From Hyalangium minutum (GTDB lineage: Bacteria > Myxococcota > Myxococcia > Myxococcales > Myxococcaceae): 64,000 nt of DNA. The notes under the pieces are model-generated. The model worked only from the letters and a program-made list of their open reading frames with translations. It made no database searches and was not told where the DNA came from. The first letter of the stretch is position 1. Every line of letters begins with the position of its first letter. This document shows positions 9,982 through 41,148 of the stretch, piece after piece. A program made the position numbers and the translations under genes. The stretch is taken from positions 165,169 through 229,168 of the forward strand of contig NZ_JMCB01000023.1 in NCBI RefSeq assembly GCF_000737315.1, given 5' to 3'.

Positions 9982-12759
<2,778 letters not shown>

Positions 12760-21839: not shown

Positions 21840-22733
21840 GTGATAAGAATCATGGTACATTTCAGTAAGTCGGACCTTGCCATGGCATTTCTCACCCTCT
21901 CCATGGTCTGGGGAACGGCTCCAAGAGCGGCTTCTCCCTCTTCGCGGATGCAACCGACGAGTACGGATTCCCACAGTCCCGATTCAACGAAGAAGCACCT
22001 TCCAACAGCGCTTGCTGTAGCGCTCCGCCTATACGAGCGCCTTGAATATGAACAAGCACTTGAGCAGTTAGCTCGCTCGAAATCGGCGACCTGGGACACC
22101 GATGTGCGTGTGCTCGCTTGGCTCTATGAGGGAATCATTCTTGCCAACCTCGGCTATGCAGACCGCTCTCGTGAAGCTTTTCGCGAGGGACTCCGCCTCC
22201 ATCCATCCTCTGTCCTGCCCATCGAGGTCTCACCTAAGATCGCCCAACTCTTCCAGGACGTTCGCCATGAAGTGCAACAAGAAACCTCAGCATCACCTCT
22301 ACCGAAGGCGTTGGAACTCCCCTCTGTTCCTCCTGTCGATAAGCAAGCAGAGCAATCTCCGCCTTCGATTGAAAACCACAACCCCTCTCCTGAGCCACGT
22401 CAGGCGGAGGCTACAGACAGTAGTCCAAAGCTTGCTCCCTGGGCACCAACGTCTCCTTCCAAGCCAGAAGAAAGCCGCTTCGTGAAAAGCCACCACGTGG
22501 CGTTTGCCCTTGGGGGGCTCCTCGCATCTACCGGCATCGTGCTACTGGCGACCATGGGCTCCGCACATCCCGAGGACAAATCCACGCACCTGCTCACGGG
22601 CAGCATTGCTGTCGTGGGAGGACTGAATCTCATTGCCTTTGGGGCAACCACTGCAATGGGACAACGCAGCCCCCAAACCGTGGGTCCTCTCCAGCGCCGG
22701 TATGCCTCTGTCGGTGCTCAGTTGTCCTTCTAG
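21840..22733 (+). CDS. Exported protein with TPR-like N-domain (paralog 2)
   Basis: Near-identical core to the upstream gene (LYERLEYEQALEQL..WLYEGIILANLG..SREAFREG..VLPIEVSPK.AQLFQD); ends in QLSF. Confidence 0.7.
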   Translation: MIRIMVHFSKSDLAMAFLTLSMVWGTAPRAASPSSRMQPTSTDSHSPDSTKKHLPTALAVALRLYERLEYEQALEQLARSKSATWDTDVRVLAWLYEGIILANLGYADRSREAFREGLRLHPSSVLPIEVSPKIAQLFQDVRHEVQQETSASPLPKALELPSVPPVDKQAEQSPPSIENHNPSPEPRQAEATDSSPKLAPWAPTSPSKPEESRFVKSHHVAFALGGLLASTGIVLLATMGSAHPEDKSTHLLTGSIAVVGGLNLIAFGATTAMGQRSPQTVGPLQRRYASVGAQLSF

Positions 22734-22742
22734 TCCTCCGAA

Positions 22743-24419
22743 ATGAACATCGGACGCTACGAGGTCATTCGAAAGCTCGCCACGGGTGGCATGGCCGAGG
22801 TCTTCCTCGCCAAAGTGGCAGGCCCATTCGGCTTCGAGAAGACTCTTGTAGTCAAAAGGATCCTGCCTCACTTGGCGGATGAGCCCGCCTTCGTGGAAAT
22901 GTTCCTCGCCGAGGCCAAGCTCGTCGCCCAGCTCAACCATCCGCACATCGTCCAGATCTTTGATTTCGGAGAAGCCGAAGGCGCGTACTTCGTTGCAATG
23001 GAGTACATCGATGGTCCCAACCTGCGCACCCTTCTGAAGCACGCTCGCACGCGACAACCTCACCTGCGTCCCACGCTCTGCGCGAAGATGATCGCCGCAG
23101 CATGCGAGGGACTGGCTTATGCCCATGACTTCCATGATCCGGTGACGCGGCGCCCTCTGAACCTCATCCACCGCGACATCAGCCCCGACAACATCCTCCT
23201 GTCGCGCCAAGGCGCGCTCAAAGTGGCTGACTTCGGCATCGCCAAGGCCACCGGCCATGGGCCCATGACCCAGGAGGGAGTCCTCAAGGGCAAGCTGCCC
23301 TACATGTCGCCTGAGCATCTGCGGGGAAAAAGGCTCGATCGCAGAGCCGATGTTTACGCACTCGGGCTCGTGCTTTACGAACTCCTGACCTGTCGTAAGC
23401 CCTTTGATGTGACGACGGAGGCAGGTCTCCTGAGGGCAATCATTGAAGACCCCTTCATTCCCGCGGAGGAGAGACGGCCAGATCTCCCAGAGCACCTCCA
23501 GCAGATCCTAGATCGAGCCCTCGCGAAAGACCGAGATGAGCGCTACCCGGACTGCCTCTCATTTCAAGCAGACCTTGAGCGTTTCGCTGCCTCTGAAGGG
23601 GAGACTCTGGGATCACTCCATATCGCCCGCCTCATCACACATCTGGAAGCCGATACGGCTCAACCCCTGCCGACGCCCCCTCCTTCCTTCCCTACGACCC
23701 GAGACTTCAGGTCCATGGAGGATCCCCTCACGCTGCCACGAGATCCAACGGTCTCGAGCAGACCTCATGCGCGCGCTCCAGGTTCGCTCCCGCAATCCAC
23801 AGGAGTGCTCGATGAGGCAACCTCGTTTGAGCAGAAGATGCGCTCACGCGGGCGAATCCAGGTGGCAGCATCCATCCTGGCCGTCTTGCTCTTCGCGGGT
23901 GGCGGTGGCTACCTGCTGTCGCACGGTAGAGGCGCTGTCCCTCCTCGGCCAGCAACTGCCTCCGATGCGGGCCCTGACCTCGCAGATGCCGGGATTGCCC
24001 ACGCAGAAGCCAAGCATGAACCTGCCCCCACTCAGCCCTTGGCTCCTCCAGTTCTACAAGATGCTGCGGATGCAGGGGCCGCTGCGACGCCCCCAGTGCT
24101 GATACTGGATGCAGGGCCTGCGCCCTTTTCCCCTCCAAAACCTGCCGCTCCTCGCCCCAAGTCCCCCTTACTCACCCAGCAACCCACAGGTAAAACTGTC
24201 GCAGGCACCGGCTTCGTTGAGTTCCGCGTCGTCCCCTACGCGACTGTCTTGCTGGATGGACAAGAACTCGGGACCACGCCGTTCGATCGGGTCGAGGTCT
24301 CCGCAGGCCGCCATACTGTCCGTCTTGTCAACCAAACGTTCCCCAAGACCGAGACGCGCACCATCTACGTGAGACCAGGAGAGCAGGTTGTCGTTAAGCA
24401 CAACTTCGAGACGCAGTGA
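22743..24419 (+). CDS. Membrane Ser/Thr protein kinase with C-terminal PEGA-like domain
   Basis: GGMAEV, VVK, HRDISPDN, DFG, GKLPYMSPE; one TM helix; C-terminal VPYATVLLDG..LGTTP...GRHTVRL. Confidence 0.9.
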   Translation: MNIGRYEVIRKLATGGMAEVFLAKVAGPFGFEKTLVVKRILPHLADEPAFVEMFLAEAKLVAQLNHPHIVQIFDFGEAEGAYFVAMEYIDGPNLRTLLKHARTRQPHLRPTLCAKMIAAACEGLAYAHDFHDPVTRRPLNLIHRDISPDNILLSRQGALKVADFGIAKATGHGPMTQEGVLKGKLPYMSPEHLRGKRLDRRADVYALGLVLYELLTCRKPFDVTTEAGLLRAIIEDPFIPAEERRPDLPEHLQQILDRALAKDRDERYPDCLSFQADLERFAASEGETLGSLHIARLITHLEADTAQPLPTPPPSFPTTRDFRSMEDPLTLPRDPTVSSRPHARAPGSLPQSTGVLDEATSFEQKMRSRGRIQVAASILAVLLFAGGGGYLLSHGRGAVPPRPATASDAGPDLADAGIAHAEAKHEPAPTQPLAPPVLQDAADAGAAATPPVLILDAGPAPFSPPKPAAPRPKSPLLTQQPTGKTVAGTGFVEFRVVPYATVLLDGQELGTTPFDRVEVSAGRHTVRLVNQTFPKTETRTIYVRPGEQVVVKHNFETQ

Positions 24420-24532
24420 CCGCCAGTGAAGAGAGCACGCTCCCCTTGAATGAGTGTGGCGGGTCCCGCGTCGTACGGTACCGTACCCACGACCCTTTCC
24501 TCTTCACCTGATCCGCCTCTGGGACTCTCTCC

Positions 24533-25759
24533 ATGACCCGACCGTCTCGTGTTCTCGTAGCCTGTCTCGCGCTGTTCGCCTCGACCTCCGCGCTCGCCGT
24601 GGAGCTCAACTACAAGTGGAAGAAGGGCGACACCCACCGCTTCAGCTACGAGGACGACACCACATTCGAGATGGCCGGAGCCGCCGGGATGCCCGGCATG
24701 GCCGGCATGCCTGGGATGGCCGGCATGGGCGCCGGCATGAAGATGAAGCTCATCTCCACCTTCACCGAGAAGGTGCTCAAGGTCCGGCCCGATGGCTCCG
24801 CGGACATCGAGCTCACCGTCAACAAGCTCGACTTCTACCAGGGCGGCTCCAAGGTCGCCTCCATCGCCAACATCCCGCCCGCCGCCCGTGTCGTGAAGGC
24901 CGAGGTCGATCGCAAGGGCCGTGCGAAGTTCTATCGGATGGTCACTGTCTACATGCGCGACAACCAGATGTACCTCGGTGTCCACAATGCGCACGCCGGT
25001 CCAAACGGCGCCTCGATGTCCGCATCCGACGGCAATCAGCAGGTGGATGTGGTCGCCTCCGTCGACCCGAAGACGGGCAAGCTCACCGCCTCCATGAAGG
25101 TCACCGAGCGCCCCCCCGCGCTCAAGAAGGTATCCATTAAGGAGGAGGACCCCGGCGTTGACGTCCTCCCGAAGCAGATCTTCGAGATGATGGTGCTCCC
25201 CGAGGGCAGCATGGAGCCCGGCCAGCGCATCGACGTGGCCATGCCCTTGGGCACTCTGAACGTGGAGATGGCCGCGCTCAAGGGAACCGTCGCCGAGCTG
25301 CGCACCCAGATGAACAGCAGCGCCGCCGTGGCCAGTCCGGCCGAGTCCTCCGCCCCGGGCCGCGGCAAGGGCCGCAAGAACGCTGCCTCTCCCCCGCCGT
25401 CCAATGATGAGGATCAGTCGCTGGGCGGCGCGGACGTCGAGGACGACGGCTCGCACACGGCCGAGCCCACCATGGGCGGCATGAACATGGGTGGCATGAA
25501 CATGGGTGGCATGAACATGGGCGGCATGAACATGGGTGGCATGAACATGGGCGGAGCCCCCGGTGGCGCGTCCCCGTCCGAGGGCGGCATGGCGGCCGGC
25601 ATGAAGATGGACGTGGATGTCACCGCCGGGTTCGACGTCGCCGCGGGCAGGCTGCTGTCCCTCACTGGCACCCTGTCCTCCGACATGGGCATGGGCGGCA
25701 TGGAGGGGATGGGCGGCAGCAAGGTGAACTCGCGCGTCACCCTCAAGCGCATTCCCTGA
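24533..25759 (+). CDS. Exported protein with three Met/Gly-rich tracts
   Basis: Signal peptide (STSALA); beta-rich sequence starting YKWKKGDTHRF; tracts GMPGMAGM, (MGGMN)5 and MGMGGMEGM. Confidence 0.75.
   Translation: MTRPSRVLVACLALFASTSALAVELNYKWKKGDTHRFSYEDDTTFEMAGAAGMPGMAGMPGMAGMGAGMKMKLISTFTEKVLKVRPDGSADIELTVNKLDFYQGGSKVASIANIPPAARVVKAEVDRKGRAKFYRMVTVYMRDNQMYLGVHNAHAGPNGASMSASDGNQQVDVVASVDPKTGKLTASMKVTERPPALKKVSIKEEDPGVDVLPKQIFEMMVLPEGSMEPGQRIDVAMPLGTLNVEMAALKGTVAELRTQMNSSAAVASPAESSAPGRGKGRKNAASPPPSNDEDQSLGGADVEDDGSHTAEPTMGGMNMGGMNMGGMNMGGMNMGGMNMGGAPGGASPSEGGMAAGMKMDVDVTAGFDVAAGRLLSLTGTLSSDMGMGGMEGMGGSKVNSRVTLKRIP
25472..25555 (+). repeat. In-frame 15-bp tandem repeat x5 (MGGMN)
   Basis: ATGGGYGGCATGAAC repeated five times. 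Confidence 0.93.
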
Positions 25760-25864
25760 GCCACCCCTCTGTCACGCGGCCAGCGGACCTACGAACCGCA
25801 GCCGAGGCCCCTCGCGTGATTTTTTCCGGGGATTTCCCGCCTCCAGATCCCGCCTGGACGCCGT

Positions 25865-26977
25865 GTGTGCTACGCCGGGGGAGTGGCACGCATCCTCATT
25901 GACTTGCGCATGGTCCGCGGCCGGCTGCACGGGATCGCCCGCTATGCCCTGGAGCTGGCGCGACGGCTGCCCGCGCTCGCGCCGGACCTGGACTTCCACG
26001 GGCTCACGGCGCCTGAAGGCCTGCCCACCGGGTTGGGGGCCCTGACGCCCGCCATTCCCCTGCACCGCGCCCGCGCCAGCTTCCTCGCCCCCGTGTGGGA
26101 GCAACCGGCCCTGCTCGCGGATCTCGTGGAGCTCTCGCCGGATCTCTTCCACGCCACCTCGTTCTCGCTGCCTGGGCTGTGGACGGGGAAGCTCGTGGCC
26201 ACGCTCCACGATGCCAACCACCTGGCGCTGCCGGAGAACTACAGCCCCGTCCACACGCTCTATTACCGGATCATCGTCGGCCCTCGCGCCCGCCGCGCCG
26301 CCGCGCTGCTCACCGTGTCCGAGTTCTCCCGCGAGGAGCTGGCCCGATACCTCCACCTGAACCCCTACCGGTTCCAGGTCATCGCTGCCGGCGTGGACTC
26401 GGGCTTCCAGCCACCCACTCCCGTCCAGGCCCGGGACTTCCGCCAGCGGCACCACCTGCCGGAGCGCTACCTCGCAGCGGTGGGCAACACGAAGGCCCAC
26501 AAGAACCTCGGGCTGCTGGCGAAGCTCGCGCCGCAGTTGCCCGTTCCCATCGTGCTGCTCGCGGGCAAGGGGGCTGCCCAGGAGCTCGGATTCCCCGACA
26601 CCACCGTGGAGCTGGCGGAACTGCCCGAGGAGGAGATGCCCCTCTTCTATGGCGCTGCGCACGCGTTGCTGCTGCCCTCCCGCTACGAGGGCTTCGGCCT
26701 GCCCGTGCTGGAGGCCATGGCGGCGGGCTGTCCCGTCCTCTCCTCGAATGTCTCGGCGCTCCCCGAGGTGACCGGCGAGGCGGCGCTGCTGCTGCCTCCG
26801 GAGGACGTGCAGGCGTGGACCGATGCAACCCTGCGCCTGCTGCGGGACGACCGGCTGCACCGGACTCTGGTCGAGAAGGGCCTCGAGCGAGCCGAGCGCT
26901 ACACCTGGGACGCCTGCGCCACGCGCACCCTCGCCGTCTACCGGCGGGTCCTCGAGAAGTCCTCCTCGGGCCGGTGA
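25865..26977 (+). CDS. Glycosyltransferase family 4 (MtfB/WbaZ-like)
   Basis: HGIARY, VATLHD, VGNTKAHKNL, PSRYEGFGLPVLEAMAAGCPV. Confidence 0.92.
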   Translation: MCYAGGVARILIDLRMVRGRLHGIARYALELARRLPALAPDLDFHGLTAPEGLPTGLGALTPAIPLHRARASFLAPVWEQPALLADLVELSPDLFHATSFSLPGLWTGKLVATLHDANHLALPENYSPVHTLYYRIIVGPRARRAAALLTVSEFSREELARYLHLNPYRFQVIAAGVDSGFQPPTPVQARDFRQRHHLPERYLAAVGNTKAHKNLGLLAKLAPQLPVPIVLLAGKGAAQELGFPDTTVELAELPEEEMPLFYGAAHALLLPSRYEGFGLPVLEAMAAGCPVLSSNVSALPEVTGEAALLLPPEDVQAWTDATLRLLRDDRLHRTLVEKGLERAERYTWDACATRTLAVYRRVLEKSSSGR

Positions 26978-26982
26978 CGACG

Positions 26983-29900
26983 ATGCCGTCTTCACCCCCG
27001 AGCTCCCCGTCGAATCCCCTCACGGCCACCTGCGTGAAGGCGCACGAGGTAGAGCTCTTCCACCAGGGCCAGCTCCCAGCCGAGCGCCGGCAGCGGATCA
27101 CTGAGCACCTCCCGGGCTGCCCGCGGTGCCAGGCCTTGCTGCCCGAGGTCTCCCAACAGGCCCAGGGTTCCGTCTCCGCGTCGCGCACGGTGGATGACCC
27201 GACCCAGCCTCAGCGCGTCCGGGTGCGGCCCGTGACCCAGAACCTGCCGCCTGCCCCGGCTCGCTCCGAGGCGCCCCCTGTGCACGGAGCCAACGCGCCA
27301 CCCGAGCAACCCTCGGCACCGGCCTCGGCGGGCTTCGCCCCGGGCGTTCGCATCGGCCGCTACGTCGTCGATCGCGTGCTGGGCCAGGGAGGAATGGGCG
27401 CGGTCTACCTCGCGCACGATCCCGAGCTGGACCGCCGCGTGGCCATCAAGCTGTTGCACCCGGCCTTGTCGAACCCAGAGAACCGGGCACGCCTCCTGCG
27501 CGAGGCCCAAGCCATGGCGCGCGTGCACCATGCCCACGTGGTGACGGTGCACGACGTCGTCACCTGGGAAGACCAGCTCTTCGTCGCCATGGAGTACGTG
27601 GAGGGGGACACGCTCCGCGAGTGGATGCAAACCCGGCGCTCGCTTCATCAAATCCTGGAGCTGTTCCGCAAGGCCGGCGAGGGTCTGGGCGCCGCCCACG
27701 CCGCAGGTCTCATCCACCGCGACTTCAAGCCCGGCAACGTGCTCATCGGCGTGGACGGCTCGGTGCAGGTGTCGGACTTCGGGCTGGCGCGCTCGGCGAA
27801 CGCGGCGGCCGAGCCTGAGCCCTCCGCCCCCGAGCCCGCTCCCGCCCCACCTGCGGCGCTGCTCCAGCAGGAGCTGACGGAGACGGGCCTGTTGATGGGC
27901 ACGCTGGGCTACATGGCGCCCGAGCAGATGCTGCTCAAGCCCATCGACGCGCGAAGCGATCAGTTCAGCTTCTGCGTCACGCTCTACGAGGCCCTCTACG
28001 GCGTGCGTCCCTTCCAGGGCAAGGACGCGACCGCGCTGGTCCAGGTCATCTACAATCGGACCTTCCAGGCACAGCGGAGCCGGCTCCGCGTACCGGGCCA
28101 CATCCGCGAGGTGGTGCTGCGAGGCCTGAGCCCGCTGCCCGAGGAACGCTTTCCCAGCATGGAGGCACTGCTGGCGGCGCTGCACCAGAAGCCGGAGGAA
28201 GATGAGTCCTCGCGGGTCCGGCTCCGGCGGCGGATGCTCCGAGGCGTGGCGCTGGGCATGCTGGCCACGGGGCTCGTGGCGGCGGTGGCCACCACCCAGG
28301 CATGGCGCAGCTTCGAGGAGCGAGCCCAAGGACTGCTGCTCACGTCCCGTCCAAAGCCGTGGAACCCGGACGTGTTCATCCTCGCGGTGGATCAGCCCAC
28401 CCTCCGCCAGATGGGGTGGCCCATCTCCCGCTTCAAGCAGGCGCGCATGCTGGAGGCCCTGGAGCGCGCGGGCGTGGCGGCGGTGGGAATCGACGCCTTC
28501 CTCTTCTCGCCCGCGAGAGAAGGACCCGAGGCGGACATCGCGTTCGCCCAGGTAATGAACCGCTACGGCCGGACGGTCCTTGCGGTGCCCTGCACCGCGG
28601 ACGACGGCATCGATCTGGAGCAGCTCGCCCAGCAGGTGGGCCCCTCGTCGCTGCCCGAGGGCCCCTCGCCCCGCTTCCGCTGCAGCCGCGTCATCGTCCC
28701 AGTGGATCCCCTGAGACAGAGCGCGCTAATGGCCCAGGTGGAGGTGGCCCGCTCCGCCTCCGGCAACGTCCGAGGCGCCTACGTGCTGGCCGAGGTCGCG
28801 GGCCGCTCACTGCCGGGGCTCGGGCTGACGACGTACCTGCTCGGCCAGGGACTGAAGCCTGACACCGACCTGATCCAGGAGGCAGGCGGGGTGCGCGTCG
28901 GCACCATGCATGTCCCGCTGAACCCGGAGGGCGCTGTCCTCACGAGCTTCCGTCTGCCGGATCCGGATCATTTCCTGTCATACGGCGCGCTGTATGCCAC
29001 GCTGAGCGAATCGGATCCCCCCACCCTGCCGCCCGATGTGGTGGAGGTGCTGAAGGGCCGGTACATCCTCTTCGGTCAGACGGCGGAGAGCATCCGGGAC
29101 CTGGGGCCCTTCGCCAACGGCAAGCAGTACCCCCTGGTGCTCCTGCACGCCGCGCTCTTGAGCGATCTGATCGAGCAGCACCCGATTCGCGAGGTGCCGC
29201 GCTGGATGGAGCTCGCGCTCATCCTCTTCTGTGGCGCCCTCCTCACGGCGGCGGCGCTGGTGCTCCGGCCCACCCTCACCTTTGGCGCCGTGCTGCTGGT
29301 GCTGATCGGCATCCTGGGAGGCACGCTGCTGCTGGCCAAGGGCGGCTGGGTGGCCGCGCCTCTGGGGCCCATGGCGGCCTCGGTGCTGGCGTTCGCGCTG
29401 GTGCTGGCGGGACGGCTCTCCGCCGAGGAGCGCGCGCGCTCACGGGTGCGCAGCGCCTTCGATGGCTACGTGGACGAAACCGAACTCGGGAGGCTCCTGG
29501 CGGACGCGGAGCACCCGGCGCTGCTCCAGGGCGCGCAGAAGCACCTCACCGTGCTCCAGGCCCAGGTCCAGTCCCCTCCGGGAGGAGCAGAGCGGCAGCC
29601 TCCCGAGGAGCGCATCCTGCACCTGCGTCAGGCCTTCCAGGTGATGACGGAGGAGGTGGTGCGGCGCAAGGGGCGCGTCGAGACCCTGCGCGGCAACGGG
29701 CTGCTGGCGGTGTTTGGAGACCCTCTCGCCCTGCCCGATCACGCGCCGCGCGCAGTGGAGGCGGCGCAGGCCATCCAGTCCCGTCTGGAGGCGCTGCAGC
29801 GGACCTCGGACGAGGGCCTCGGGCTGGAGACACGCGTCGGCATCGCCACGGGTGAGGCCGTCATCGGCAACGTGGGTCTGCAGGGCGGGAAGATGGAATA

Positions 29901-30084
29901 CGCCGTCATCGGAAGGCCACTTGAACGAGCCCTGGAACTGGCACGTCAGGCCTCCACGGGACAGATCCTCGTCTCAGCAGCCACCCGTGAGGCGTGCGCG
30001 AGCCGCTTCGGCTTCGGCCTCATTCAGGAGAGCGGCGAGACAGAGCCAGGCTTCGTGCTCCAACGCCCCAGAGCTCCGTTCTAG
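26983..30084 (+). CDS. Zn-finger / Ser-Thr kinase / CHASE2 / degenerate class III nucleotide cyclase membrane receptor
   Basis: HLPGCPRC; intact kinase motifs (GQGGMG, VAIK, HRDFKPGN, DFG, YMAPE); one TM; CHASE2 motifs (ILAVDQ..GWP.SR, VGID, GRYILFG..D); three TM; cyclase-like tail (LAVFGDP..DHA.RAV.AA, RVGIATG..VIGN.G). Confidence 0.85.
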   Translation: MPSSPPSSPSNPLTATCVKAHEVELFHQGQLPAERRQRITEHLPGCPRCQALLPEVSQQAQGSVSASRTVDDPTQPQRVRVRPVTQNLPPAPARSEAPPVHGANAPPEQPSAPASAGFAPGVRIGRYVVDRVLGQGGMGAVYLAHDPELDRRVAIKLLHPALSNPENRARLLREAQAMARVHHAHVVTVHDVVTWEDQLFVAMEYVEGDTLREWMQTRRSLHQILELFRKAGEGLGAAHAAGLIHRDFKPGNVLIGVDGSVQVSDFGLARSANAAAEPEPSAPEPAPAPPAALLQQELTETGLLMGTLGYMAPEQMLLKPIDARSDQFSFCVTLYEALYGVRPFQGKDATALVQVIYNRTFQAQRSRLRVPGHIREVVLRGLSPLPEERFPSMEALLAALHQKPEEDESSRVRLRRRMLRGVALGMLATGLVAAVATTQAWRSFEERAQGLLLTSRPKPWNPDVFILAVDQPTLRQMGWPISRFKQARMLEALERAGVAAVGIDAFLFSPAREGPEADIAFAQVMNRYGRTVLAVPCTADDGIDLEQLAQQVGPSSLPEGPSPRFRCSRVIVPVDPLRQSALMAQVEVARSASGNVRGAYVLAEVAGRSLPGLGLTTYLLGQGLKPDTDLIQEAGGVRVGTMHVPLNPEGAVLTSFRLPDPDHFLSYGALYATLSESDPPTLPPDVVEVLKGRYILFGQTAESIRDLGPFANGKQYPLVLLHAALLSDLIEQHPIREVPRWMELALILFCGALLTAAALVLRPTLTFGAVLLVLIGILGGTLLLAKGGWVAAPLGPMAASVLAFALVLAGRLSAEERARSRVRSAFDGYVDETELGRLLADAEHPALLQGAQKHLTVLQAQVQSPPGGAERQPPEERILHLRQAFQVMTEEVVRRKGRVETLRGNGLLAVFGDPLALPDHAPRAVEAAQAIQSRLEALQRTSDEGLGLETRVGIATGEAVIGNVGLQGGKMEYAVIGRPLERALELARQASTGQILVSAATREACASRFGFGLIQESGETEPGFVLQRPRAPF

Positions 30085-30086
30085 CG

Positions 30087-30458
30087 TCAGGGCGCAGAGT
30101 GCCTGTCCCCGCTCGAACCGCCCGGGTTGAAGCCGCCACCCGGGTTGGGGGCCGACTGGGGCGCGTCCGACGTGCCGCCGGGGTTGTACCCGTTGCTATT
30201 GCCGTAGGCCGAGAGCGAGCCGCCGCGCAGCGTCCACTCCGTCTTCTGGGTCTCCTGGCCGGGGTTGCCCACACTCGGGCTGCCCGCGAGTGACTCCGAG
30301 CCGCCCCCGAAGAGGCCTCGAATGTTGTCGCCGAAGAGGCCCACCACGCCGATACACCCGATCCCCACGAGGAACACAATGACGACGACCTCGGTCAGAC
30401 TGTGGCCCAAGGCCTGGCGTCCGGGTCTTCGCGTGGCGGAAGTGGCCATGGAAACCAA
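30087..30458 (-). CDS. Flp/type IVb-like pilin with Gly/Ser/Pro-rich C-terminal extension
   Basis: Basic leader, then G^HSLTE followed by a hydrophobic helix and LFGDNIRGLF, as in Flp pilins. The usual E-Y tyrosine is replaced by Val. Confidence 0.65.
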   Translation of the reverse strand: MVSMATSATRRPGRQALGHSLTEVVVIVFLVGIGCIGVVGLFGDNIRGLFGGGSESLAGSPSVGNPGQETQKTEWTLRGGSLSAYGNSNGYNPGGTSDAPQSAPNPGGGFNPGGSSGDRHSAP

Positions 30459-30510
30459 CGTAACCAGATTTTCACTGGAAGTGTAGGTCTTTCTCGTTTT
30501 CGTCGGTCCG

Positions 30511-31755
30511 TCAACGCTCGCTGCCCGAACACAAGCCCAGTCCCCAGATGAGGGCGAAAGACAGGTGCACGCTGGGGTGGAACGGCAGGTAGTGCACCAA
30601 CGAAAGAATGTGGAAGCCGCCGAAGGAGAGCAGCGCCCCCGTGGCGGCGAGCGAGCCCGCGCGGTGCCTTCGCACGAGCGCTCGGGCCAGCAGCAGGTGG
30701 ACGGAGAGCAGCAGCCCCAGACCCACGAGCCCGGTCTCCGCCCACGTGGTGAGCCACAGGTTGTGCGAGTCCGTGGCCAGCAGATCCGTGATGCCCGTCT
30801 CGGACTGGGTGGCCAGGGCCGCGGGCTTGTGGTTGCCGAAGCCCACGCCCAGCAGCGGGTGCTCCTTCACCAGCCGCCAGCCCACCGACATGGCCAGGGT
30901 CCGCTCACCGCCGAAGAGGTTCTCGACGGCCTTGCCCATGCGCTCGCGCCACGCGGGTGTCACCACCACGAGCGCCGCGAGCACAGCCGCCACGGCCAGC
31001 CCCACCTTCCGAGGTGTCCCGTGGCTGAGCAGCAGCAGCGCCAGCACGCACACGGCGAACCCCGTCAGCAGGGCCGCGCGAGCGAAGGCCGCGTAAGGAA
31101 CGAGCAGCAGCGCGCCCACCACCGCCCCGGCCAGCACCCGGTGCCAGGCCACCCTGCCCCGGGCCAGCACGGACAGCGCAGGCCCCAGCATGGCGATGGC
31201 TCCATGAGAGAAGCGCAGGCGGTGGAAGAGGAAGCCTCCGGCCGCATAGCGCGGCTCCTGCTCCGTGCCGAAGTTCTCGTGCAGCCGGGACAGGTTCAGC
31301 TTCAGGAAGGCGGGCGGCTCCCAGTTCCAGAGGACGAAGTGCTGGAAGAGCCCCACGGCCGAGGCCAGCAGCCACCCTCCCGCCATCAGCGCCGCGAGCA
31401 GCGCCCAGGGCACACCCACCGTTCCGATGGACGCCACCGCAGCGCCCGCCACCGTGTCGAGCGCCTGCCCGTAGCGCGCGGTGCGAGGCCAGCGCTCCGC
31501 CACTCCCGTCATGAGCGCCAGGGCGGGCGAGAGGAGCTGCCATACCGTCAGCGCCACCGAAGCGCGCACGTAGGCGCGCACATCCGGCTCGAGGCTCAAG
31601 GTCTTGCGGAAGAACAGCACCAGCGCCAGGAGCACGGCCGCGCTCGCGGCAACCTGCTGGAGGCCCTCGGCGAGGACAGTGCCCAGAATCCATCCAGCCA
31701 GGACGACAGTGACAGCTCGGCGCAACGCTCTCTCCCACTCAGACGAGGCTCCCAC
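30511..31755 (-). CDS. waaL: O-antigen ligase family (Wzy_C) membrane protein
   Basis: About 10-12 TM segments; periplasmic loop with R..AM.VG..LVKEHPLLGVGFGN and SHNLWL..WAETGLVG; lies within the LPS cluster. Confidence 0.82.
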   Translation of the reverse strand: MGASSEWERALRRAVTVVLAGWILGTVLAEGLQQVAASAAVLLALVLFFRKTLSLEPDVRAYVRASVALTVWQLLSPALALMTGVAERWPRTARYGQALDTVAGAAVASIGTVGVPWALLAALMAGGWLLASAVGLFQHFVLWNWEPPAFLKLNLSRLHENFGTEQEPRYAAGGFLFHRLRFSHGAIAMLGPALSVLARGRVAWHRVLAGAVVGALLLVPYAAFARAALLTGFAVCVLALLLLSHGTPRKVGLAVAAVLAALVVVTPAWRERMGKAVENLFGGERTLAMSVGWRLVKEHPLLGVGFGNHKPAALATQSETGITDLLATDSHNLWLTTWAETGLVGLGLLLSVHLLLARALVRRHRAGSLAATGALLSFGGFHILSLVHYLPFHPSVHLSFALIWGLGLCSGSER

Positions 31756-31914
31756 CGGCAGCGCCCGCGGAGAACCTGTCGGACAAGCAGACTCCTCTCA
31801 TGGGAGCTGCGCCGGCCGACGGTCCTTCCGCCCATCATGTGGGCACCGTCTCACAGGTGGCAAGCACCTCCGTTGTAGAGCCACCCGTGCCACCCTCTAG
31901 AATCGAGCCCACCT

Positions 31915-40597: not shown

Positions 40598-41098
<501 letters not shown>

Positions 41099-41148
41099 GT
41101 CCCCTCCGAATGTGCCCAATCTATCCGGTTGTCCAGGCCTGTAGCATC

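Follow-up and report, generated by a model that had tools for sequence, protein, structure and literature searches.

A CHASE2 receptor Ser/Thr kinase of Hyalangium minutum with a predicted catalytically dead class III cyclase domain and a conserved pilin-like neighbor

A 64-kb stretch of the genome of the myxobacterium Hyalangium minutum (contig NZ_JMCB01000023.1, positions 165,169 to 229,168; this whole stretch is called the window below) carries a gene for a membrane receptor in which a Hanks-type Ser/Thr kinase and a class III cyclase fold flank a single CHASE2 sensor. Judged from its sequence, the C-terminal domain of this receptor is a pseudo-cyclase. It keeps the class III fold and fails every test of an active cyclase, because the metal Asp residues, the substrate Lys and Thr, the transition-state Asn and Arg, the GxT phosphate loop and the terminal Lys are all lost. 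Class III cyclase domains are among the commonest signalling outputs of bacteria, and to our knowledge non-catalytic ones with a defined role have hardly been described in these organisms. The receptor therefore offers a natural experiment, in which a clade of live CHASE2 cyclases can be set against a kinase-bearing clade where catalysis is lost at the active-site positions and the fold appears to be under selection.

The fold of the C-terminal domain is well supported. When the last 194 residues were compared with solved structures by sequence, class III cyclases were found, the best of them the CHASE2-linked guanylyl cyclase Cya2 (PDB 2w01, E 1.7e-17). The AlphaFold2 model of aa 812-1033 had a predicted local distance difference test score (pLDDT) of 82.7 and a predicted template modelling score (pTM) of 0.77. 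All of its top Foldseek matches were class III cyclases, with an E-value of 7e-16 for Cya2 and target-normalised TM-scores of 0.70-0.86 to single-domain chains (Cya2, CyaC, CyaB, Rv1625c, RhoGC and mammalian adenylate cyclase).

The chemistry of the domain is a different matter. The alignment to P0136, a live CHASE2 cyclase, spans 204 aa at 42% identity and has two gap positions, both outside the catalytic motifs. Within it, VLFSDVKGYT of P0136 becomes VLQAQVQSPP in the receptor, KIMGDG becomes TLRGNG (in its wider setting, GRIDKIMGDG against GRVETLRGNG) and EYTVLGATVNLAARLE becomes EYAVIGRPLERALELA; KKLTVLFSDVKGYT is aligned to the receptor segment KHLTVLQAQVQSPP, and LEYTVLGATVNLAARLE to MEYAVIGRPLERALELA. 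The first and second metal Asp residues are thus replaced by Q861 and N905, the substrate Lys and Thr by T901 and A974, and the transition-state Asn and Arg by E981 and E985. The substrate pair specifies ATP when it is Lys with Asp or Thr, a pair discussed in PMC6005667, and GTP when it is Glu with Cys or Gly; the complete set D-K-D-T-N-R is the signature of an adenylate cyclase. The phosphate loop is changed from GYT to SPP, and a 5-residue deletion takes out the C-terminal "LKG" segment with its terminal Lys. The alignment to Cya2 of Synechocystis (2w01) gave the same losses. A first-pass annotation of this DNA, made from the letters alone, had proposed the loss of the metal Asp residues and of the Asn/Arg pair; the motifs that it quoted were correctly placed, and neither alignment to active class III enzymes restored the catalytic Asp, Asn or Arg.

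These losses are a property of the receptor family and not of the window protein only. For this comparison, 24 members of the family were set against 61 live relatives. In the live group, both metal Asp residues, the Asn and the Arg are conserved at 100%, the Lys at 97% and the Thr at 93%. The full D-K-D-T-N-R set is kept in none of the 24 aligned family members, with single positions varying among them: Asp stands at position 905 in three, whereas position 861 is Q, H, W, R, V or S and Asp in no member. The receptor family has lost 14 residues that the live group conserves to 80% or more (F859, D861, T866, Y884, D900, K901, D905, M931, T974, V980, N981, L982, R985 and E987), while scaffold positions are common to both.

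The first-pass annotation had also read the domain as repurposed, and the pattern of constraint supports this over decay. The mean identity of the orthologues to the window protein is 72% for the kinase, 63% for CHASE2 and 61% for the dead cyclase domain, compared with 34% for the N-terminal linker and 28% for the C-terminal tail. The ratio of nonsynonymous to synonymous substitution rates (dN/dS), estimated by the Nei-Gojobori method against the three closest orthologous genes and read here as a comparison between regions, is 0.22-0.33 for the dead domain, 0.16-0.27 for the kinase and 0.19-0.44 for CHASE2, and 0.44-1.1 for the linker and tail. Inside the dead domain (aa 856-1010) 23 columns are invariant. 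Moreover, the family has conserved residues of its own that are absent in live relatives, namely a basic cluster (R895, K896, R898 and R903) together with E891, E926, G969 and E981. The Glu at the former Asn position (E981) is 92% conserved in the family, residue 985 is Q or E, and the former Asn/Arg positions are mostly acidic or neutral. By these measures, purifying selection on the dead domain resembles that on the kinase and CHASE2 and sets the domain apart from the linkers, and for this reason it is likely to keep a structural role.

Residue numbers (aa) in this report refer to the 1033-aa receptor read from the ATG at 26983, and all other positions refer to the window. The order of its parts is a zf-HC2-like zinc motif, the Hanks Ser/Thr kinase, a first transmembrane segment (TM1), a periplasmic CHASE2 domain, three further transmembrane segments, a linker and the class III cyclase fold (Table 1). 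In Pfam searches, Pkinase (PF00069, aa 127-362) scored 137.3 bits against a cut-off of 31.7, CHASE2 (PF05226, aa 429-753) 102.7 against 26.3 and Guanylate_cyc (PF00211, aa 870-1006) 27.9 against 21.9, and zf-HC2 (aa 29-50) remained slightly below its cut-off with 21.5 against 22.2. The topology was taken from a hydropathy scan, not from a dedicated topology predictor; it gave hydrophobic segments at about 421-441, 742-761, 765-786 and 790-811, with Arg/Lys-rich stretches before the first and after the last. Since one segment precedes CHASE2 and three follow it, as in the layout of CHASE2 receptors, the kinase and the C-terminal domain are both predicted to be cytoplasmic. The kinase itself is predicted to be catalytically intact. 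GQGGMG, VAIK (K156), E174, HRDFKPGN (H245-R246-D247-x-K249-x-x-N252), D265-F266-G267, APE (P313-E314), D326 and R389 are all present, and these motifs are invariant or nearly so in 24 orthologues. The activation-loop insert of this RD kinase is unusually long and variable, and T299 and T307 inside the loop are invariant. Both the four-part architecture with its membrane topology and the intact kinase motifs had been described in the first-pass annotation, and they held up here. The linker at aa 812-855 is an element that we take to be cyclase-transducer-like.

Table 1. Positions in the window of the receptor gene, its parts and the two genes next to it
Feature	Position	Strand	Basis
Whole receptor gene	26983..30084	+	1033 codons, ATG to TAG (30082-30084); about 30 orthologue clusters at 48% identity or more
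zf-HC2 / anti-sigma-like zinc motif (aa 17-55)	27031..27147	+	C17..H42-x3-C46-x2-C49, i.e. (C/H)-x24-H-x3-C-x2-C; conserved in 13 orthologues
Pro/Ser/Ala-rich variable linker (aa 56-122)	27148..27348	+	34% mean identity; dN/dS 0.44-0.85
Hanks-type Ser/Thr kinase, RD, long activation loop (aa 123-400)	27349..28182	+	Pkinase 137 bits; motifs
TM1 (aa 421-441)	28243..28305	+	hydropathy scan; RVRLRRRMLR just before it as positive-inside flank
Predicted periplasmic CHASE2 sensor (aa 442-741)	28306..29205	+	CHASE2 103 bits; C537 and C567 invariant
TM2-TM4 bundle (aa 742-811)	29206..29415	+	three hydrophobic segments; 73% mean identity
Predicted cytoplasmic linker (aa 812-855: ..ERxRxxVRxAFDGYVDxxxLxRLL..)	29416..29547	+	predicted helical; gap-free alignment to live CHASE2 cyclases
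Class III cyclase homology domain, predicted catalytically dead (aa 856-1010)	29548..30012	+	Guanylate_cyc 27.9 bits; 2w01 E 1.7e-17; AlphaFold2 pLDDT 82.7
Upstream GT4 glycosyltransferase	25865..26977	+	Pfam; 5 nt before receptor; upstream only in L083/L084, L003 and L001
Flp/Tad-pilin-like gene, about 120 aa	30087..30449	-	stop 2 nt from receptor stop; homologues at orthologue loci

The relatives of the receptor point to its origin. A HMMER search with the CHASE2 and cyclase part (aa 420-1033) against 1.84 billion representative proteins gave 40,909 matches, among which the receptor family was represented by P0018, P0028 and a few fragments. Directly after the family came kinase-less proteins of about 630 aa, which are 34-45% identical over CHASE2 and cyclase and in which the match begins at their own N-terminus. 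The best 150 of the 40,909 matches were screened, and the six catalytic positions were read in the 147 that have an alignable cyclase domain. Among these best matches, the closest kinase-less relatives (P0134-P0148) all have D-K-D-T-N-R, all proteins grouping with the kinase-bearing family have the catalytic set destroyed, and no bifunctional intermediate with a kinase, CHASE2 and a live cyclase was found. The closest kinase domains outside the family are those of myxobacterial kinase-TPR proteins, many of which have zf-HC2. Because the nearest kinase-less relatives are CHASE2 cyclases with the complete catalytic set, it is likely that a module of zf-HC2 and kinase was fused ahead of a CHASE2 adenylate cyclase and that catalysis was lost afterwards. 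The kinase-less relatives include fusions of another kind: three of those that were scanned with Pfam (P0134, P0135 and P0154) have a C-terminal PilZ domain, so that a domain making cyclic AMP (cAMP) stands beside a fold that binds cyclic di-GMP. In P0154 the catalytic set is partly lost (H-R-E-T-T-R).

The receptor gene has one conserved neighbor. Tail to tail with it lies a gene for a small pilin-like protein, whose product has a short basic N-terminus, then G-H-S-L-T-E-V, a hydrophobic helix (VVIVFLVGIGCIGVVGLFGDNIRGLFGG) and a tail rich in Gly, Ser, Asn and Pro. The prepilin pattern of Flp/Tad pilins is a Gly, four residues and Glu-Tyr (G|xxxxEY), followed by a hydrophobic helix. In the orthologues the motif reads G-Q-S/N/A-L/M-T-E-Y/F/M/V, mostly G-Q-S-L-T-E-Y or the same with a final F, and its Thr and Glu are invariant; the window copy has Val where the prepilin motif has Tyr. 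By tblastn, a tail-to-tail homologue was found in L083, L003, L082 (on the same contig as L002), L004, L005, L081 and L087, and L086 has two tandem pilin-like copies. Wherever an orthologue locus offers enough sequence, a pilin-like homologue is thus found next to the receptor gene or close by, whereas the other neighbors differ. When metagenome contigs were scanned from the pilin side, 13 loci were obtained. The receptor gene lay beside all six close homologues whose surroundings could be read, a seventh contig was too short to judge, and the remaining six were weak, partial matches (35-50% identity) to other proteins with no receptor near. The pilin-like gene is therefore the only conserved neighbor of the receptor gene, and, because the linkage in gene order is seen from both directions, its product is our best candidate partner, ligand or co-receptor.

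How might a dead cyclase serve a receptor kinase? Class III cyclase domains are head-to-tail dimers in which both sites are built from two subunits, and bacterial receptor Hanks kinases are switched on through dimer-dependent autophosphorylation. We consider it fairly probable that the protein acts as a dimeric receptor Ser/Thr kinase of the inner membrane, in which the dead cyclase is kept as a dimerising conformational transducer that sets the geometry for trans-phosphorylation by the kinase. In such a receptor, the module of zf-HC2 and Hanks kinase would have joined a CHASE2 adenylate cyclase through a new N-terminal transmembrane connection, and the cyclase domain would have stopped making or sensing nucleotides. 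The domain would remain an obligate head-to-tail dimer and a transducer, a role inherited from the CHASE2 cyclases. A periplasmic or intramembrane signal received at CHASE2 and the transmembrane bundle would then alter the geometry of the cytoplasmic dimer, and this change would control trans-autophosphorylation by the RD kinase tethered to TM1. In live CHASE2 cyclases, the corresponding segment aligns without a gap to the linker between TM4 and the cyclase domain. More speculatively, the basic patch R895/K896/R898/R903 together with E981 might provide a new surface for contact with the kinase domain or a partner, and the pilin-like membrane protein might be a partner, a ligand or a co-receptor. 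We infer the whole of this mechanism, and the receptor family is small and lineage-restricted. If the dead domain is indeed a dimerising transducer, the family would show how a sensor can be rewired from a second messenger to protein phosphorylation, and it would also open a way into CHASE2 signalling, for which the pathway of Sinorhizobium meliloti was the one characterised example found. The receptor and its pilin-like neighbor are present in strains of Cystobacter fuscus including DSM 2262, and the pair may therefore be testable in culture.

It is a tentative possibility, and no stronger than that, that the two genes form an unrecognised cassette in which the receptor senses the pilin-like protein, in the membrane or at CHASE2, and the dead cyclase dimer relays this to the kinase. 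In that case, the receptor would be a bacterial mirror image of the animal receptor guanylyl cyclases, in which a dead kinase regulates a live cyclase, and a class III pseudo-cyclase would for the first time be assigned a role in a bacterial kinase pathway. The linkage to the pilin-like gene at least provides a concrete candidate partner.

Several observations weigh against a transducer coupled to the kinase and against a pilin-like partner. We purely infer that a domain borne on TM4 can influence a kinase borne on TM1. The bias in G+C content at third codon positions (GC3) lowers the synonymous rate and inflates the absolute dN/dS values given above, so that the comparison between regions alone is safe. 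In one clade of the family (P0024-P0027), the cyclase-like domain stops about 25 residues short; this clade, which includes L086 (8873-9453, minus strand), is also without the zf-HC2 N-terminus. The metagenomic protein P0181 (917 aa, with zf-HC2, kinase and CHASE2) keeps an eroded cyclase remnant that Pfam does not detect. Because of this truncation and this erosion, constraint on the domain appears to be relaxed in some lineages. As to the neighbor, Flp_Fap stays below its Pfam cut-off even in the best orthologue (20.5 bits against 32.2) and the window copy is unmatched. No Tad assembly genes (CpaF/TadA ATPase, prepilin peptidase or secretin) were among the annotated neighbors in the window and six orthologue loci, and in L085 one gene sits between the receptor gene and the pilin-like gene.

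Other roles for the dead domain have to be considered. It could be a docking platform for a substrate of the kinase or a phospho-dependent partner, or the phospho-acceptor of the kinase itself, and not a transmitter of signals. The family-specific cluster R895-K896-x-R898 and R903, with E891, E926 and E981, all absent in live relatives, would suit such a surface. However, the upstream linker is conserved with the live cyclases, which points to kept coupling with the membrane bundle, and no partner is known. We regard docking in place of signal transmission as unlikely, although the two ideas are compatible. The domain might also still bind ATP, GTP or a cyclic nucleotide and act as an allosteric sensor for the kinase; nucleotide sensing had been offered in the first-pass annotation as one of two uses for the domain. 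The fold is intact, newly conserved charged residues lie together near the former site, and regulators can be bound at degenerate sites of heterodimeric class III cyclases, an example being the forskolin site of mammalian adenylate cyclase. Nevertheless, the contacts to metal, base, ribose and phosphate, including the Asn/Arg pair and the phosphate loop, are all gone, the segment with the terminal Lys is deleted, and E981 together with the Q or E at 985 would tend to repel a triphosphate. Of the two uses, nucleotide sensing is thus the one that has become quite improbable.

It is conceivable, at low probability, that the dead domain silences live CHASE2 adenylate cyclases by forming heterodimers with them and so links the kinase to cAMP output. 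Class III sites span the dimer interface, a dead domain without both half-sites would leave a heterodimer without a complete site, and live relatives with 34-45% identity exist. On the other hand, no live paralogue is in evidence for this genome, of which the 64-kb window alone was covered, a preference for heterodimers is unexpected at 42% identity, and membrane-tethered homodimers are simpler. The least probable explanation, in our view, is that the domain is a functionless relic in slow decay after the kinase took over the output. The truncation in P0024-P0027 and the heavy erosion in P0181 are what such a process would leave behind; yet in identity and dN/dS the domain is on a par with CHASE2 and far ahead of the linkers, and the 23 invariant columns, the new family-specific residues and the confidently predicted fold are hard to reconcile with it.

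The receptor resembles several known systems in part. Cya2 has the layout CHASE2-transmembrane-cyclase (PMC6005667), and the CHASE2 cyclases CyaD1, CyaD2 and CyaK of S. meliloti respond to a plant protein signal (PMC13001267). The receptor shares with these adenylate and guanylate cyclases a transmembrane segment, CHASE2, three transmembrane segments, a linker and a class III cyclase domain. It differs from them in that its cyclase is dead by sequence and zf-HC2 and a kinase precede TM1, and its output is presumably phosphorylation and not cAMP or cyclic GMP. CHASE2 and a Hanks kinase are joined in one chain in cyanobacterial Ser/Thr kinases such as alr1869 and all4838 of Anabaena (PMC2176072). 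According to the survey that describes them, accessory domains are as a rule C-terminal, with CHASE2 and FHA as exceptions; this implies that the sensor comes first, and no cyclase domain is reported there (PMC2176072). Going by this description, the receptor differs in being kinase-first and in having a dead cyclase at the usual place of the output after the third transmembrane segment of its bundle.

With PknB/Stk1-type receptor kinases and myxobacterial zf-HC2-kinase-TPR proteins, the receptor shares a cytoplasmic N-terminal RD kinase, a transmembrane segment and an extracytoplasmic sensor. Its sensor, however, is CHASE2 and not PASTA or TPR, and three further transmembrane segments and the dead cyclase end follow. 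The NCBIfam model PknB_PASTA_kin accordingly matched the kinase part only, with 229.7 bits against a cut-off of 450. In animal receptor guanylyl cyclases (GC-A/NPR-A), the kinase-like domain is a dead regulator and the cyclase is live and dimeric, and both follow a single transmembrane segment. These proteins also combine a kinase fold and a class III cyclase in one chain, one live and one dead, and 9bcv and 9bcs were among the Foldseek matches. The roles are reversed, however, and the domains of the receptor flank the sensor, so the analogy is a functional one only, with no sign of common descent of the fusion. TOMM kinase/cyclase fusions (TIGR03903) are bacterial proteins in which a class III cyclase domain shares one chain with a Ser/Thr kinase. 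They are soluble and larger and are not known to have CHASE2 or transmembrane segments. The receptor scored 116.7 bits against the TIGR03903 cut-off of 705.75, and the match listed was to the kinase only (aa 151-357); assignment to this group was rejected because the score is far under the cut-off and the match covers the kinase only. Membrane sensors tied to pilins are known as well: PilS senses the pilin PilA within the membrane and PprAB regulates Flp in Pseudomonas, and these sensors are histidine kinases. The likeness lies in a membrane sensor kinase that is encoded beside a pilin or functionally tied to one, and pilin sensing by PilS is the nearest comparison for the candidate partner. 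The receptor, however, couples a Hanks kinase to CHASE2 and a dead cyclase, and its pilin-like neighbor scores below the family thresholds.

The family is rare. A word-indexed search of 5.8 billion proteins found about 30 clusters with at least 48% identity and then a gap down to 23%, and in the HMMER search of 1.84 billion representatives the family made up a few clusters at 50% identity. A pattern scan of representative genomes covering 185,579 species, which finds close relatives only since the pattern was built from this one protein, gave full-length copies in five records, two from Cystobacter fuscus strains and three from myxobacterial metagenome-assembled genomes. The nearest named relatives are in Hyalangium, Archangium and Cystobacter, and the family, where its members have names, is of Archangiaceae type. 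A wider second subfamily around P0181 was considered and rejected, as a homologue search from P0181 found P0181 alone, a singleton. Our literature search found no description of the architecture of kinase, CHASE2 and dead cyclase, and database names in the family are generic ("protein kinase domain-containing protein", "CHASE2 domain-containing protein", "hypothetical protein D187_005033"), the JGI name for relatives being a listing of three domains. That the arrangement is unusual, as the first reading of the sequence had suspected, is thus borne out, and the receptor is a rare, lineage-restricted and uncharacterised variant of known receptor types. In L005 (C. fuscus NCWS), at about 11953-11958, the orthologue is found in two tblastn segments in different frames, near residue 684. 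This split is either a frameshift or a sequencing error; the C. fuscus copies in L004 and L081 are intact.

The start of the receptor gene deserves comment. The automatic list of open reading frames (ORFs) extends its frame upstream to a GTG at 26095, a stretch that overlaps the GT4 gene in another frame, and the public gene call, P0001 (982 aa), begins 51 codons downstream of the ATG at 26983. Since the longer N-terminus, MPSxP...ACLKxHEVxLF...HLxxCxRC, is conserved in 13 orthologues, the ATG at 26983 appears to be the better start. The start of P0001 would drop the conserved zinc-finger segment (26983-27135) and is probably mis-called. The zinc segment of the receptor comprises about 40 conserved residues only, and a full anti-sigma domain is longer; zf-HC2 scores 28.4 bits in the divergent relative P0181. 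No sigma factor gene adjoins the receptor gene in the window, where about 10 kb separate it from the nearest Sigma70_r4 protein (40598-41119), and an anti-sigma role paired with an adjoining sigma factor is accordingly unsupported. Sigma70_r4_2 genes lie 1-3 kb from a receptor gene only at L086 (2844-3143, minus strand) and L088 (280-1170, plus strand; the contig of P0181). Both are near more divergent receptors, and they might be related to the anti-sigma-like zf-HC2 N-terminus there.

The other surroundings of the gene are less conserved. In the window, the order upstream is Bac_transf (minus strand), a GT4 gene (minus strand), a TPR-like ORF, a Ser/Thr kinase with PEGA, a 408-aa protein, the second GT4 gene and the receptor; downstream are the small pilin-like gene (minus strand), Wzy_C (minus strand), a hydrolase, two LptF/LptG genes (minus strand) and purD. 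The GT4 gene next to the receptor ends with TGA at 26975-26977. Neighbors were compared in nine orthologue loci. The GT4/Wzy_C/LptFG surroundings recur in L083/L084 (84% identity) and L003 (69%), and L001 has the GT4 gene and remnants of the 408-aa gene upstream, its contig ending inside the receptor gene. They are not found at L082 (71% identity), at the Cystobacter loci L081, L004 and L005, or at L085 and L086. The gap between the GT4 and receptor genes is 5 nt in the window, 64 nt in L083 and about 330 nt in L003. Co-transcription with genes of lipopolysaccharide (LPS) synthesis had been suggested for the receptor at the outset. With a gap of only 5 nt, co-transcription with the glycosyltransferase gene is plausible in this genome; a conserved association with LPS or glycosyltransferase genes was rejected, because GT4, Wzy_C and LptFG are kept in the nearest relatives alone (L083, L003 and, for GT4, L001). 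When 24400-31900 was scanned for promoters and terminators, a single promoter-like site turned up, upstream of Wzy_C, and nothing resembling a terminator, a result that is uninformative at the 68% G+C of the window. A role of the GT4 gene in defence, suggested by a match to the Pfam model "GT4-conflict" (34.8 bits), was set aside, as the generic GT1/GT4 models score 82 bits and the context is chromosomal housekeeping.

The kinase with PEGA is a second Hanks Ser/Thr kinase of 558 aa with PEGA at its C-terminus (22743-24419, plus strand), about 2.5 kb upstream of the receptor gene on the same strand. This kinase, the ORF at 21840-22733 and the 408-aa gene are absent at the equivalent position of L083, so that the stretch appears to have been inserted locally between one GT4 gene and the other. 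The 408-aa protein (24533-25759, plus strand) has no Pfam match and its gene has a GC3 of 0.90 and good codon bias; a homologue with 60% identity lies upstream of GT4 in L003.

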